Positions 45,164 to 48,271 of a DNA stretch of 64,000 bases are shown here, in pieces. The DNA is taken from the sequence record OZ196285.1; one strand, 5' to 3'. The notes beneath the pieces were generated by a model, which saw only the letters and a program-made list of their open reading frames with translations, did no database searches and was not told the origin of the DNA. A program made the translations under genes and the position numbers. Numbering within the stretch: position 1 is the stretch's first letter; the number at the start of each line of letters is the position of its first letter.

Positions 45164-45170
45164 AAAACGG

Positions 45171-45214
45171 TTGCGTTGTTGATGCTGATCACCTATGATT
45201 CTTGCATCAACAAC
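45171..45214 (+). promoter_or_regulatory. Early promoter inside an 11-bp inverted repeat
   Basis: GG-TTGCGT-17-TATGAT; arms at 45175-85 and 45204-14. Confidence 0.7.
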
Positions 45215-45231
45215 AAAACGAGAACATTATC

Positions 45232-45756
45232 ATGCAACATACACTGACTTTTCAGCACATTTGGTTCAATTTGACAATCAAAGAACGCAAGCTTGTAGCA
45301 TTTGAAGAGCACGACAACTACGCGGGTGGTAATCTGATTATTCCTGACAACGTTGTGCCTGAGCATTGGGCTTATGATAACATCGCAAATCGTATTGAAT
45401 CGACGCGTGATCGTGTAGTTGTTCAGCAATTCTTATCAATGCACACTGACAATGGTTGGCGTAGTGTTGAAAACTACAAACAGTTTGTTCAGCCTTATGA
45501 AGGCGCAGCATATTCGATTTTCATGTGCGACACGACTCTGATCGTTCGTTCACGCGCTCTTCAAATGGAGCCGCAAGTAGACAACTTCTTTGAAAACGAA
45601 GTATGCAATCTAAATCGCGAGAAAATTGCAACTGAACTGTTAATGATGGTTAATCAAGGTATCGTTGATATCGAGACGCTTGGTGATAAGTCGTTCAACG
45701 ACATCGTGAATGAAAGCTTCACGACAATTAATGATGAAAAACACGGAGAATCGTAG
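45232..45756 (+). CDS. Early hypothetical protein
   Basis: GAGAACATTATCATG RBS. Confidence 0.7.
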   Translation: MQHTLTFQHIWFNLTIKERKLVAFEEHDNYAGGNLIIPDNVVPEHWAYDNIANRIESTRDRVVVQQFLSMHTDNGWRSVENYKQFVQPYEGAAYSIFMCDTTLIVRSRALQMEPQVDNFFENEVCNLNREKIATELLMMVNQGIVDIETLGDKSFNDIVNESFTTINDEKHGES

Positions 45757-46196
45757 TGAAAGGTTATATTTTTGTAAATCGATACTGTAAAGGTATTCAA
45801 GCGGGTATTCAAGGCGCACATGCAATCTTGCGTTTAGCACGCAAGAACGGCGAAGAATTTCAAAAGTGGTTAGATTCACACGAAACTATCGTGATTCTAT
45901 CTGCTGCTAGTCACGACCATCTAGAAGCAATTAAAGCGCGTCTAGAAGAGATCGGTGGCATTGAAGACATTCAAACTTTCACAGAAGAAGGTTTACGTGA
46001 CTCGCTAACTGCGCTATCATTTATTGGTGACGAGCAGCTAATCTCTGTTCAAACAGAAATGTACGAATGGCGACAGCTTCGCAAAGTCGGTGAAGGTCTG
46101 AAACGACGTGAATTCGATAGCGACATGTACTTCAAGTATGGTCAAACGTACGAACTTGCACTTTATCTACAAGGATTTAGCAAACATGACGGTTAA
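45756..46196 (+). CDS. Peptidyl-tRNA hydrolase 2 (PTH2)-like fold protein
   Basis: YIFVN...GIQGAHA...W...TIVIL...FTEEGL...TAL pattern; GTG start. Confidence 0.5.
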   Translation: MKGYIFVNRYCKGIQAGIQGAHAILRLARKNGEEFQKWLDSHETIVILSAASHDHLEAIKARLEEIGGIEDIQTFTEEGLRDSLTALSFIGDEQLISVQTEMYEWRQLRKVGEGLKRREFDSDMYFKYGQTYELALYLQGFSKHDG

Positions 46197-46419
46197 TAAA
46201 TTACGAATGACAACTGCGTCTCGTTTCGACGAGCTAGTTTCTCTACCAGACGTGGTGGTTAAAAATACGACAATCGGTTCAGAATTCATCACTTCTGTTT
46301 ACAGAAACGAGAACATTCTTGCTGAACGTATCATCGAAATGAAGCAAGCTGAACACTTTGAAGTGGCTCTATCTGAGCCAGTCAAAGAAGCGCGTCGCAA
46401 CCCTAAACTACCGGGATAA
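46186..46419 (+). CDS. Hypothetical protein
   Basis: ATG 46186 with AAGGA RBS. Confidence 0.6.
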   Translation: MTVNKLRMTTASRFDELVSLPDVVVKNTTIGSEFITSVYRNENILAERIIEMKQAEHFEVALSEPVKEARRNPKLPG

Positions 46420-46423
46420 GAAC

Positions 46424-46609
46424 ATGAAAAAATCTAAAGGTTTTACTCTCATCGAAATGATTGTGACTGTTGTTATTCTCGGTATTCTCGCTTCGGTTGC
46501 TCTTGCCTTCTTATCTGGACAAGACTCGACGTATTACCCTACATCGTATCAAGAAAAGGTCATCGAGCTTGATGGTACTGAATATCAATGCACACCTACG
46601 GGACGATAA
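46424..46609 (+). CDS. Truncated type IV prepilin-like peptide (61 aa)
   Basis: MKKSKG|FTLIEMIVTVVILGILASVALAF class III signal peptide. Confidence 0.8.
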   Translation: MKKSKGFTLIEMIVTVVILGILASVALAFLSGQDSTYYPTSYQEKVIELDGTEYQCTPTGR

Positions 46610-47509
46610 ATGCAAAACTATTTGAACTTATGTCAAGACATCATCGATAATGGTGATGTTCTTGAGAATCGAACTGGCACGAAGACACTCAGTGTCATTT
46701 CACGCGAATTGCGTTGGGATTTAGCAGACGGTTTCCCGTTGCTAACGACTAAGAAAATGGCTTTGCGTGCTATCATCGGTGAGCTATTGTGGTTCATTAG
46801 CGGCTCTGGCAGCATTTCTCGACTTCGTAAATACTCGAATCTCGATGACGATGCGTTCTGTATCTGGCAGCAAAATCTTGATGAGTTGAATGAGCGTGCA
46901 AAAGAAGCAGGTATCGTTCGAAACGAAGACGATCTCGGCTACGTATACGGCAAAGTTTGGCGTAATCGTCTGAGCGTTGACCCTGACGGTAACGTAACTA
47001 CGTTCGACCAGTTTCATCAATTGCTGTGTGACATCATGGAAGTTAAAGCAGACCCTACAAAGGCAGCTCAACGTCGCATGATCGTAGATGCATGGGATCC
47101 GTACTTTCATACGCTTGAGAATTCGACTGACGTAGCACTACCGCCATGTCACTACGGTTATCAAGTGTTCGTACGCAACGGCAAAATCTCTCTCAAGTGG
47201 AATCAGCGTTCGGTTGATACATTCTTGGGCTTGCCTTTCAACATCGCGTCATACGCTGCTCTAGTGCATATTCTAGCAGAGCTGACAGGTCTTGAAGTAG
47301 GCGAACTGATTTTCTCTGGCGGTGATGTTCATCTTTACGAAGATCACTTGATTGGTGTAGCGCAACAAATGCAGCGTGAGCCACGTTCACTTGGACGCCT
47401 AGAGTTTCCACATTTCGAAACGCTAGGCGATTTATTGTCAATGACTGCGAAAGACTTTGCAGTGAGCGACTACGACCCACATCCCGCAATTAAAGGTAAG
47501 ATGTCATGA
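46610..47509 (+). CDS. td: Thymidylate synthase (ThyA), no intron
   Basis: FPLLTTKK, ALPPCH, QRSVDTFLGLPFNIASY, DVHLY. Confidence 0.97.
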   Translation: MQNYLNLCQDIIDNGDVLENRTGTKTLSVISRELRWDLADGFPLLTTKKMALRAIIGELLWFISGSGSISRLRKYSNLDDDAFCIWQQNLDELNERAKEAGIVRNEDDLGYVYGKVWRNRLSVDPDGNVTTFDQFHQLLCDIMEVKADPTKAAQRRMIVDAWDPYFHTLENSTDVALPPCHYGYQVFVRNGKISLKWNQRSVDTFLGLPFNIASYAALVHILAELTGLEVGELIFSGGDVHLYEDHLIGVAQQMQREPRSLGRLEFPHFETLGDLLSMTAKDFAVSDYDPHPAIKGKMS

Positions 47510-47718
47510 GCAACACATTAAAAACAAGCAAAGTGAATTACTTCGATTTCAAGCCAGGTACTAAAGTCATCGTGATTGAGCGTCATTCGACGTATCAAGG
47601 TGAACAACTGACTTTGCCATACAGTGAATGTGTAGCATTCAACGATCATCGAATCTCGTCTGGCGTACTGACTGACGGTAAGATTCACTACATGTATGAC
47701 TTTGAGTTAGAGGACTAA
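47506..47718 (+). CDS. Hypothetical protein
   Basis: Coupled ORF. Confidence 0.65.
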   Translation: MSNTLKTSKVNYFDFKPGTKVIVIERHSTYQGEQLTLPYSECVAFNDHRISSGVLTDGKIHYMYDFELED

Positions 47719-47721
47719 CAA

Positions 47722-47931
47722 ATGCACGGTGATTTTTTAGTTGCGATGATTAAGGCATGGATTACTATCGTGCTGATCATCGTGGGATTGAGCGCAGTGG
47801 TAATTGGTGGCATTGGCTACGGGATATATCTTGTCGCAACTGGCACACTAGTGGGTGGTGGTGTTTTAATCATCGGCTTAGTGCTGCTTCTTATTTTATT
47901 GATTAAGTTATGGGGTGATATATGTTACTAG
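47722..47931 (+). CDS. Hypothetical two-helix membrane protein
   Basis: Two long hydrophobic Gly-rich segments. Confidence 0.65.
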   Translation: MHGDFLVAMIKAWITIVLIIVGLSAVVIGGIGYGIYLVATGTLVGGGVLIIGLVLLLILLIKLWGDICY

Positions 47932-48212
47932 CTGTATATGCCGAAGTAGACACGAATGATGGTGATTACGTTGGCGATTTGAAGCCAATTACGAGTGAAG
48001 ATGTCGAGCGTCTTGAAGAGCTTGTTCAACGTTCTGGTGATAGTCTAGCATCGTGGTCAGATGGCGAATGTCAAACGCAAAGCAATCATTTGGTGTATCC
48101 GATGTTCAGTCAAGATGAACTAAGCTTCATTGATGATTACTTGCCATCGCCTGAATACGGCTTTCACACGATTGAAACCATCAAAATCGTGCAGGTGCTA
48201 AACACTTTGTGA
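47922..48212 (+). CDS. Hypothetical acidic protein
   Basis: Coupled ORF. Confidence 0.65.
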   Translation: MLLAVYAEVDTNDGDYVGDLKPITSEDVERLEELVQRSGDSLASWSDGECQTQSNHLVYPMFSQDELSFIDDYLPSPEYGFHTIETIKIVQVLNTL

Positions 48213-48223: not shown

Positions 48224-48237
48224 CAAAATATCAATAA

Positions 48238-48271
48238 AAGGGTTGCTTCGGCAACCCTTTTTGCGTATTAT
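48238..48271 (+). promoter_or_regulatory. Early promoter overlapping an intrinsic terminator
   Basis: TTGCTT (48243)-17-TATTAT (48266); hairpin AAAGGGTTGC-TTCG-GCAACCCTTTTT. Confidence 0.75.

Follow-up and report, generated by a model that had tools for sequence, protein, structure and literature searches.

The mini-prepilin gene and its surroundings

The stretch of DNA analysed here (the window, 64,000 nucleotides) is the first 64 kb of the 228-kb genome of Vibrio phage F86 (OZ196285.1), and window and record coordinates are identical. On the plus strand, the coding sequence VPHF86_0060 (46424..46609, stop included) encodes a protein of 61 amino acids (P0001), which is annotated in the record as a hypothetical protein only. 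Its translation and its matches to the N_methyl profile and to phrog_13280 mark it as a very short prepilin, referred to below as the mini-prepilin.

The coding sequence begins with a leader of five basic or polar residues and Gly-1 (46424..46441), read directly from the sequence; the glycine, G6 of the precursor, is invariant in the family, and cleavage by the prepilin peptidase PilD would be expected at the site predicted after it. The mature N-terminus, F+1 to L+24 (46442..46513), forms the α1-N transmembrane and assembly helix with E+5 and G+14, as indicated by the AlphaFold2 helix, the hydropathy and the identity with MshA and EpsG. It is followed by a linker rich in Ser, Thr, Tyr and Gln (residues 31-44; 46514..46555), in which 10 of the 14 positions are S, T, Y or Q and the pLDDT is below 55. 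Finally, the family alignments and a low-confidence model point to a β-hairpin (46556..46597) that carries the family motif (E48 to P58) and a single invariant cysteine, Cys56. All these segments are on the plus strand.

A Shine-Dalgarno-like GGGA (46413..46416, plus strand), found by sequence reading, stands 7 nt before the ATG, and the stop codon of the previous ORF (46417-46419) lies 4 nt ahead of it. This ORF, VPHF86_0059 (46186..46419, plus strand; 77 amino acids), has neither a Pfam match nor a hydrophobic N-terminus, and is adjacent to the mini-prepilin gene in all orthologous loci. On the other side, the ATG of td, the thymidylate synthase gene (46610..47509, plus strand), abuts the TAA of the mini-prepilin gene (46607-46609). 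An alternative TTG start at 46358, giving 83 amino acids, was rejected, because it overlaps ORF 0059 and because the orthologues all begin at the M-K-(K/R)-x-K-G leader.

Two other genes of the region may be mentioned. A 'hydrolase' gene (45756-46196, plus strand) with a sub-threshold match to PTH2 (peptidyl-tRNA hydrolase; 18.9 bits vs a cut-off of 23) precedes the mini-prepilin by two genes, an arrangement conserved in all relatives. In the same gene block, two genes past td, an extremely hydrophobic small membrane protein of 69 amino acids without a Pfam match is encoded at 47722-47931 (plus strand), which could be another envelope-directed early protein.

Prepilin signature and predicted structure

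VPHF86_0060 scores 41.1 bits with the Pfam N_methyl profile (PF07963; gathering score 21.2, E = 1.1e-10) and 36.5 bits with TIGR02532 (cut-off 16.3). The leader, with three lysines among its five residues ahead of Gly-1, Phe+1 and Glu+5, is of the short type IVa/T2SS class. The hydrophobic stretch F7-L30 comprises 24 residues, with a 19-residue Kyte-Doolittle mean of up to 2.8, and the helix is followed by 31 residues of polar character, the mature peptide being net acidic. By profile scores and motif anatomy, the protein is thus placed in the class of the prepilin N-terminal cleavage/methylation domain. The two AlphaFold2 models, built from 5 and 11 sequences, both have a helix at residues 9-31/32 (pLDDT 83-93), followed by a disordered linker and, at 45-49/52-56, a hairpin with a pLDDT of about 55; beyond residue 32 confidence is low. 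A globular pilin head cannot be accommodated.

The ~53-residue α1 and the α-β head of full-length type IVa pilins and T2SS pseudopilins are absent from the 61-residue protein. The profiles of GspG (TIGR01710; 27.6 bits vs 88.85) and GspH (28.5 bits vs 80) both cover residues 4-34 only, and PF00114 is not among its Pfam matches. With C56 as its single cysteine, the protein has no two-Cys D-region, nor was a Ca site found in it; at position +22, where the pilin pattern has a proline, F86 has Ala and its relatives have Gly or other residues. The Protein Atlas yielded sub-threshold N_methyl look-alikes only, and structural neighbours are uninformative for a 61-aa helix. The first-pass annotation, made from the sequence alone, had described a truncated type IV prepilin with a basic leader, the G-1/F+1/E+5 site, a hydrophobic helix, a short tail and no head, and the translation, profiles, hydropathy and models agree with it in every structural detail.

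Transcription context

The only sizeable gap upstream of the mini-prepilin (45164-45231) contains a σ70-like promoter candidate, TTGCGT-17-TATGAT (45171..45199, plus strand), recognised by consensus match only, which would serve ORFs 0057-0064. Downstream, a GC-rich hairpin of 11 bp flanked by runs of T and A (48236..48261, not assigned to a strand) is the probable terminator at the end of this operon. The T4-type late motif TATAAATA, though enriched in the window overall, does not occur between 30365 and 58986. The gene had been assigned to an early operon just before td. The position is confirmed, since td directly adjoins the mini-prepilin stop; the timing is drawn from promoter motifs only, and early expression of the operon is a reasonable expectation.

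Distribution and conservation of the family

A tblastn search of 50,697 phage records yielded 49 that match VPHF86_0060 along 80% or more of its length, almost without exception KVP40-like vibriophages. In each of the loci inspected (KVP40, 6E35.1a, ValKK3, nt-1, V07, phi-pp2, D490 and K566) a gene of 61-67 codons occupies the same place, in the order PTH2-like 'hydrolase', 76-80-aa ORF, mini-prepilin, td, and in the unannotated record of VS1 a 61-codon ORF is present at the matching position. The mini-prepilin is a core gene of the entire KVP40-like clade. The phrog_13280 profile aligns with F86 residues 3-59 at its positions 2-59 of 67 (E = 2e-18), and the length, the site before td and the C-terminal motif with a single Cys also agree with membership in this family. 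Among the metagenome clusters, P0009 and P0049 have the same upstream neighbours as the vibriophage loci; the next gene downstream of P0049 is td, and the short contig of P0009 ends within an unscored downstream gene.

In K566 and K567, the start of td is annotated 45 nt upstream (locus position 762 in K566, against 807 in the sister phages) and overlaps the mini-prepilin gene; this is probably an annotation difference rather than biology. Metagenomes of sponge, oyster and food, as well as a metagenomic scaffold of 146 kb, contain close relatives of F86 with 87-98% nucleotide identity in the mini-prepilin gene (L192-L194; window 45200-48200), so that the F86 lineage extends beyond the original isolate.

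The family alignment has G-1, F+1, T, L, I, E+5 and G+14 invariant. A C-terminal motif specific to the family, E-[IL]-[DN]-G-[QT]-x-x-Q-C-T-P, runs through all clades and contains one invariant Cys. An acidic (W)DDDF tail ends most of the members, and is absent from F86, nt-1 and VS1. The F86 protein shares only 48-58% identity with the other members.

An exhaustive profile search of 1.84 billion representative proteins returned 53,807 matches at E ≤ 0.001, nearly all to the signal and helix only. Full-length matches are confined to five clusters of 61-66 amino acids (P0002, P0004, P0005, P0009 and P0049), and perhaps one more, a 73-aa protein on a podovirus-like contig with an RNA polymerase gene; a word-index homologue search found two near-identical proteins only. 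One genome per species from 185,579 prokaryote species, searched with the C-terminal motif pattern included, gave N-terminal matches only, reaching residue 53 at most. No full-length pilin with the mini-prepilin C-terminus was found among the 1.84 billion representative proteins and the 185,579 bacterial genomes. The C-terminal 32 residues had no match in one Vibrio genome, a blank result of a kind that shows little. As far as the searched collections show, the family appears to be phage-only.

Selection

Pairwise Nei-Gojobori estimates at unsaturated distances give ω values of 0.08-0.26 for the whole gene and 0.11-0.48 for its C-terminal half, and the mini-prepilin is therefore under purifying selection. 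Between F86 and its metagenomic relative L192 (87% nucleotide identity), the C-terminal half has 7 synonymous changes and 1 non-synonymous change (dN 0.014, dS 0.42), and the helix has 8 synonymous changes and 6 conservative replacements. Because the C-terminal changes are mostly synonymous, the periplasmic tail is a selected module and not junk. Between lineages, synonymous sites are saturated, and yet E+5, G-1, F+1 and G+14 are invariant.

These results bear on the possibility that a host pilin gene was captured and is now in decay, or that the ORF arose by chance and has no function; decay from a full pilin had been named by the first-pass annotation itself as an outcome that would refute its interpretation. 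The protein is indeed very short, and some short viral prepilin ORFs look like broken longer copies, such as the 54-aa ORF of L011 beside the 151-aa ORF of L010. Against this, the same length class and position recur in about 49 phages, including the deep outgroup F86 (PMC12028318), ω is well below 1, the C-terminal motif is specific to the family, and the relatives with this C-terminus are all phage-borne and of 61-73 amino acids. Since the family is phage-only in the searched collections, in which a full-length parent was not found, decay of a full pilin is scarcely credible.

A different question is raised by the C-terminal half, which is the most constrained part of the protein in the F86 lineage. 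The prepilin N-terminus may be a mere delivery device or anchor, with the C-terminal peptide acting at the periplasmic face of the inner membrane on a non-pilus target, for example a cell-envelope enzyme, superinfection immunity of the T4 Imm/Sp-like kind, or the timing of lysis. The motif of the peptide is conserved in all clades and has no relative in the Vibrio genome or elsewhere in what was searched, and pili are not the receptor of these phages (PMC12028318), all of which would suit such an effector. A plain signal-anchor, however, would not need invariant G-1, F+1, E+5 and G+14, a buried Glu being costly unless it is used; moreover, a related family of Pseudomonas phages, described below, keeps the prepilin part while lacking the Cys and most of the motif. 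The anchored-effector explanation is considered improbable, though not negligible.

Host machinery and candidate targets

Genome scans of F86, KVP40 and 6E35.1a found one N_methyl gene in each and no Peptidase_A24 gene in any of the three. Processing must then rely on a host enzyme, because these phages have no Peptidase_A24 of their own. In the V. rumoiensis genome, 15 genes are of prepilin type, and a single PilD is encoded in the pilABCD cluster. In Vibrio, one PilD-type enzyme serves MSHA, PilA and the Eps pseudopilins. The E+5 of pilins and pseudopilins is dispensable for PilD cleavage, but is required for assembly.

This background is relevant to the possibility that the protein is purely a decoy for the prepilin peptidase, starving host prepilins of processing without itself reaching the assembly machines. 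The substrate motif is perfect, and with a single PilD-type enzyme in the Vibrio pilABCD cluster, one decoy could hit MSHA, PilA and Eps alike. A cleavable substrate is nevertheless a weak inhibitor, and a pure decoy would leave both the invariance of E+5 and the strong selection on the C-terminal peptide unexplained; we regard it as very unlikely. The first-pass annotation had proposed either a dominant-negative pilin or such a decoy. Of this, engagement of the host filament machinery fits with the invariant E+5, the lack of a phage peptidase and the MshA/EpsG-like helix, and the decoy does not account for E+5. A complex prediction of Vibrio rumoiensis PilD (L191:1078-1968) with the mini-prepilin gave a score of 0.01, without controls, which bears on binding in neither direction.

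The phage proteins were set against the V. rumoiensis prepilins over the first 20 residues of the mature forms, EpsG being identified by TIGR01710 (194 bits) and MshA by its match to the solved MshA chain (E = 1e-23 to 1e-25). The MshA paralogues share 14-16 identical residues of the 20, EpsG 12-14, PilA 9-13, and the minor pilins and pseudopilins 5-13. The helix thus looks like that of a major subunit and less like those of minor pilins. The F86 protein is equally similar to MshA and EpsG (14/20 each), and the helix of the 6E35 clade shows no preference among host prepilins (9-11/20); the similarity to MshA vs EpsG does not discriminate between target machines.

MSHA is a known receptor of filamentous vibriophages. 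F86 itself is a T4-like phage and the outgroup of the Schizotequatroviruses (ISME J 2025, PMC12028318). The receptor of F86, KVP40 and most relatives is the porin OmpK, and that of two relatives is LamB (PMC12028318). Self-superinfection exclusion is unlikely, because the receptor is OmpK or LamB rather than pili.

Other short prepilins in viruses

In a set of 80 IMG/VR contigs with a prepilin-type ORF, the mature length is ≤80 residues in 26 and ≤60 residues in 14. Such counts of 'mini-pilins' need caution, because some of the short viral prepilin ORFs are broken copies. L010 and L011, two near-identical contigs, have tandem prepilin genes, of which the second ORF, at about 2054, encodes 151 amino acids in the former and 54 in the latter.

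The same IMG/VR contigs include a second, unrelated family of viral mini-prepilins, of 77-94 amino acids, in L018, L019, L046, L047, L053, L056, L058 and L072-L074, with the match at about 3001 in each. Its members share the GFTLIE N-terminus and end in a small module that contains two Cys (...R-C-I-x-G-Y-x-F ... G-x-G-x-x-C) and looks like a minimal disulfide-bonded D-region. In the T4-like Aeromonas phage AhFM11 (L004, 2276-2734), the prepilin motif is located mid-way in an annotated 152-aa ORF; with an internal Met as the start, the leader would have ~19 residues and the mature protein ~76, two of them Cys. This, too, is a short viral prepilin, possibly with a mis-annotated start codon.

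Proposed mode of action

The reading we favour, tentatively and with a chance somewhat short of even, is that the host PilD processes VPHF86_0060 and that the resulting headless subunit enters and disturbs the assembly of the MSHA pilus, a type IV pilus or the type II secretion system. The gene would be transcribed from the host-type promoter, probably together with genes of nucleotide metabolism, and its product would insert in the inner membrane. There, the PilD/VcpD of the host would cut after Gly6 and N-methylate Phe+1. The 55-residue product would retain α1-N with Glu+5, by which pilins dock on the assembly platform and on each other, and because these elements are kept, it could be recruited to the type IV filament machines of the host, the best candidates being the MSHA pilus, the Eps type II secretion pseudopilus or both. 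Since outer subunit contacts would be impossible without α1-C and the head, the mini-pilin may then act as a poison or terminating subunit, which would terminate or destabilise the filament. The conserved periplasmic hairpin and its single Cys may add grip on a pilin or on a component of the machine. The likely pay-off would be the loss of pili or secretion in the infected cell; how this would benefit the phage is a matter of speculation, plausible gains being the exclusion of pilus-dependent competitor phages, the detachment of the infected cell from surfaces and the shut-off of secretion.

The main sequence argument for a poison subunit is that E+5 is invariant despite synonymous saturation, for neither an anchor nor a decoy alone would need it. 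Counting against this reading, adsorption to OmpK or LamB leaves the selective benefit of pilus blocking less evident (PMC12028318), and the C-terminal peptide is so strongly conserved that the specificity would seem to reside in it.

To be headless does not by itself mean to be a poison, because very short pilins (Flp; Geobacter PilA-N) can be genuine filament subunits. The mini-pilin might accordingly be a benign, assembly-competent subunit, which joins host pili or pseudopili without blocking them, alters their surface or tip, and masks the sites of competitor phages as P-FimU does. The full-length FimU of a Pseudomonas prophage, a minor pilin, is built into the host pili, whose function is kept, and blocks tip-binding phages (PMC12952977). 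Short pilins consisting of the helix only form filaments, and the best PDB sequence matches of VPHF86_0060 are to Geobacter PilA-N ('geopilin domain 1', PDB 7tgg and 9egp); the conserved E+5 would also serve incorporation. On the other hand, a protein without α1-C and head cannot replace the surface of an MshA or PilA subunit, its producer is a virulent phage with a single lytic cycle, and there is no 'PilA-C'-like partner gene adjacent to it. Benign incorporation is rated as quite unlikely, a step below the anchored effector; both are kept in consideration, because the best-conserved part of the protein in the F86 lineage is the C-terminal peptide.

In its most far-reaching form, the poison-subunit reading would make headless mini-pilins a widespread class of phage weapon, taken up by the host peptidase and platforms and chain-terminating type IV filaments (pili and the T2SS pseudopilus). 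The unpaired Cys of the vibriophage hairpin would, in addition, capture a pilin or a component of the machine through a mixed disulfide, and a virulent, OmpK-dependent phage would thus switch off MSHA and/or secretion within minutes of infection. Taken as a whole, this combination is doubtful.

If the mini-pilin does poison filament assembly, it would offer a minimal, genetically portable means of inhibiting pili in vibrios, and perhaps type II secretion too. The recurrence of short prepilins in virulent phages of Vibrio and Pseudomonas, and in about a third of the sampled prepilin-bearing viral contigs, would then also be explained.

Comparison with known systems

The mini-prepilin is a conserved gene, and the functional hypothesis is a reasonable one that has already been published in outline. 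The idea of a mini-pilin is not new, having been noticed in databases and outlined in one paper (PMC12952977). KVP40.0030, ValKK3 ORF231 and 6E35.1a p0141, all of phrog_13280, are direct orthologues of VPHF86_0060, with 61-67 amino acids, a position before td, and the same N-terminus and Cys motif; database notes describe them as 'match to PF00114', 'PulG pseudopilin' and 'PilE', respectively. The similarity to pilins is mentioned in passing in a 2026 paper on ValKK3 (PMC13142089). A literature search found nothing relevant on a pilin of PAK_P3 or on dominant-negative pilins.

The closest published parallel is that of Sztanko et al. (Cell Rep 2026), who described truncated PilA proteins of ~60 residues in six virulent Pseudomonas phages and proposed incorporation or inhibition (PMC12952977). 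These proteins probably correspond to phrog_10597, for example gp026 of Nankokuvirus G1 (59 amino acids). Like the vibriophage family, phrog_10597 consists of headless prepilins of ~59 amino acids, encoded by virulent phages among small genes that resemble an early region. Unlike it, the family belongs to another PHROG and another host, has no Cys, and retains only an 'EI-K-GQ' remnant of the motif. The F86 protein matches phrog_10597 with E = 4e-9, its residues 1-45 aligning with profile positions 1-45 of 59 and the last third not being shared; reciprocally, P0035 matches phrog_13280 with E = 7.6e-10 over residues 3-52. The match extends past the signal peptide, and the two families appear to be related but separate.

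Other virus-encoded prepilins, namely P-FimU of the F10-like prophages of Pseudomonas, P-PilA of Xylella, PilA1/2 of SNJ2 and phrog_3433 of cyanophages, need the peptidase and machine of the host, as is proposed for F86. P-FimU is an instance of phage-versus-phage exclusion (PMC12952977), and the pilins of the archaeal virus SNJ2 are assembled by the host system (PMC12426801). These full-length viral pilins have globular domains, come mostly from temperate elements and are functional subunits, whereas the F86 protein is headless and is encoded by a virulent phage that makes no use of pili.

Among cellular pilins, Geobacter PilA-N and the Flp/Tad pilins are, like the F86 protein, naturally very short and essentially an N-terminal helix. 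PilA-N, however, keeps the whole ~53-residue α1 and pairs with an adjacent PilA-C, whereas F86 has α1-N only, and its neighbours are the 77-aa ORF and td, with no PilA-C partner of the Geobacter type. The Flp pilins have a G/xxxxEY site and a peptidase of their own, whereas in F86 a Met follows E+5; no Flp family is among the Pfam matches at E up to 10.

Type IV pili are also shut down by other phage proteins, which bind components of the machine. Tip and Aqs1 act on PilB. Pf phage encodes PfsE, an inhibitor of type IV pili (PMC8764522), and PilZ is bound by PlzR (PMC11461919). The outcome proposed here, namely the loss of pili in infected or lysogenic cells and the exclusion of pilus-dependent phages, would be shared with these four proteins. 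They are not pilin mimics, however, but act on cytoplasmic or platform proteins, whereas the proposal for F86 is subunit mimicry within the membrane, which, if true, would join the known strategies of phages against pili.
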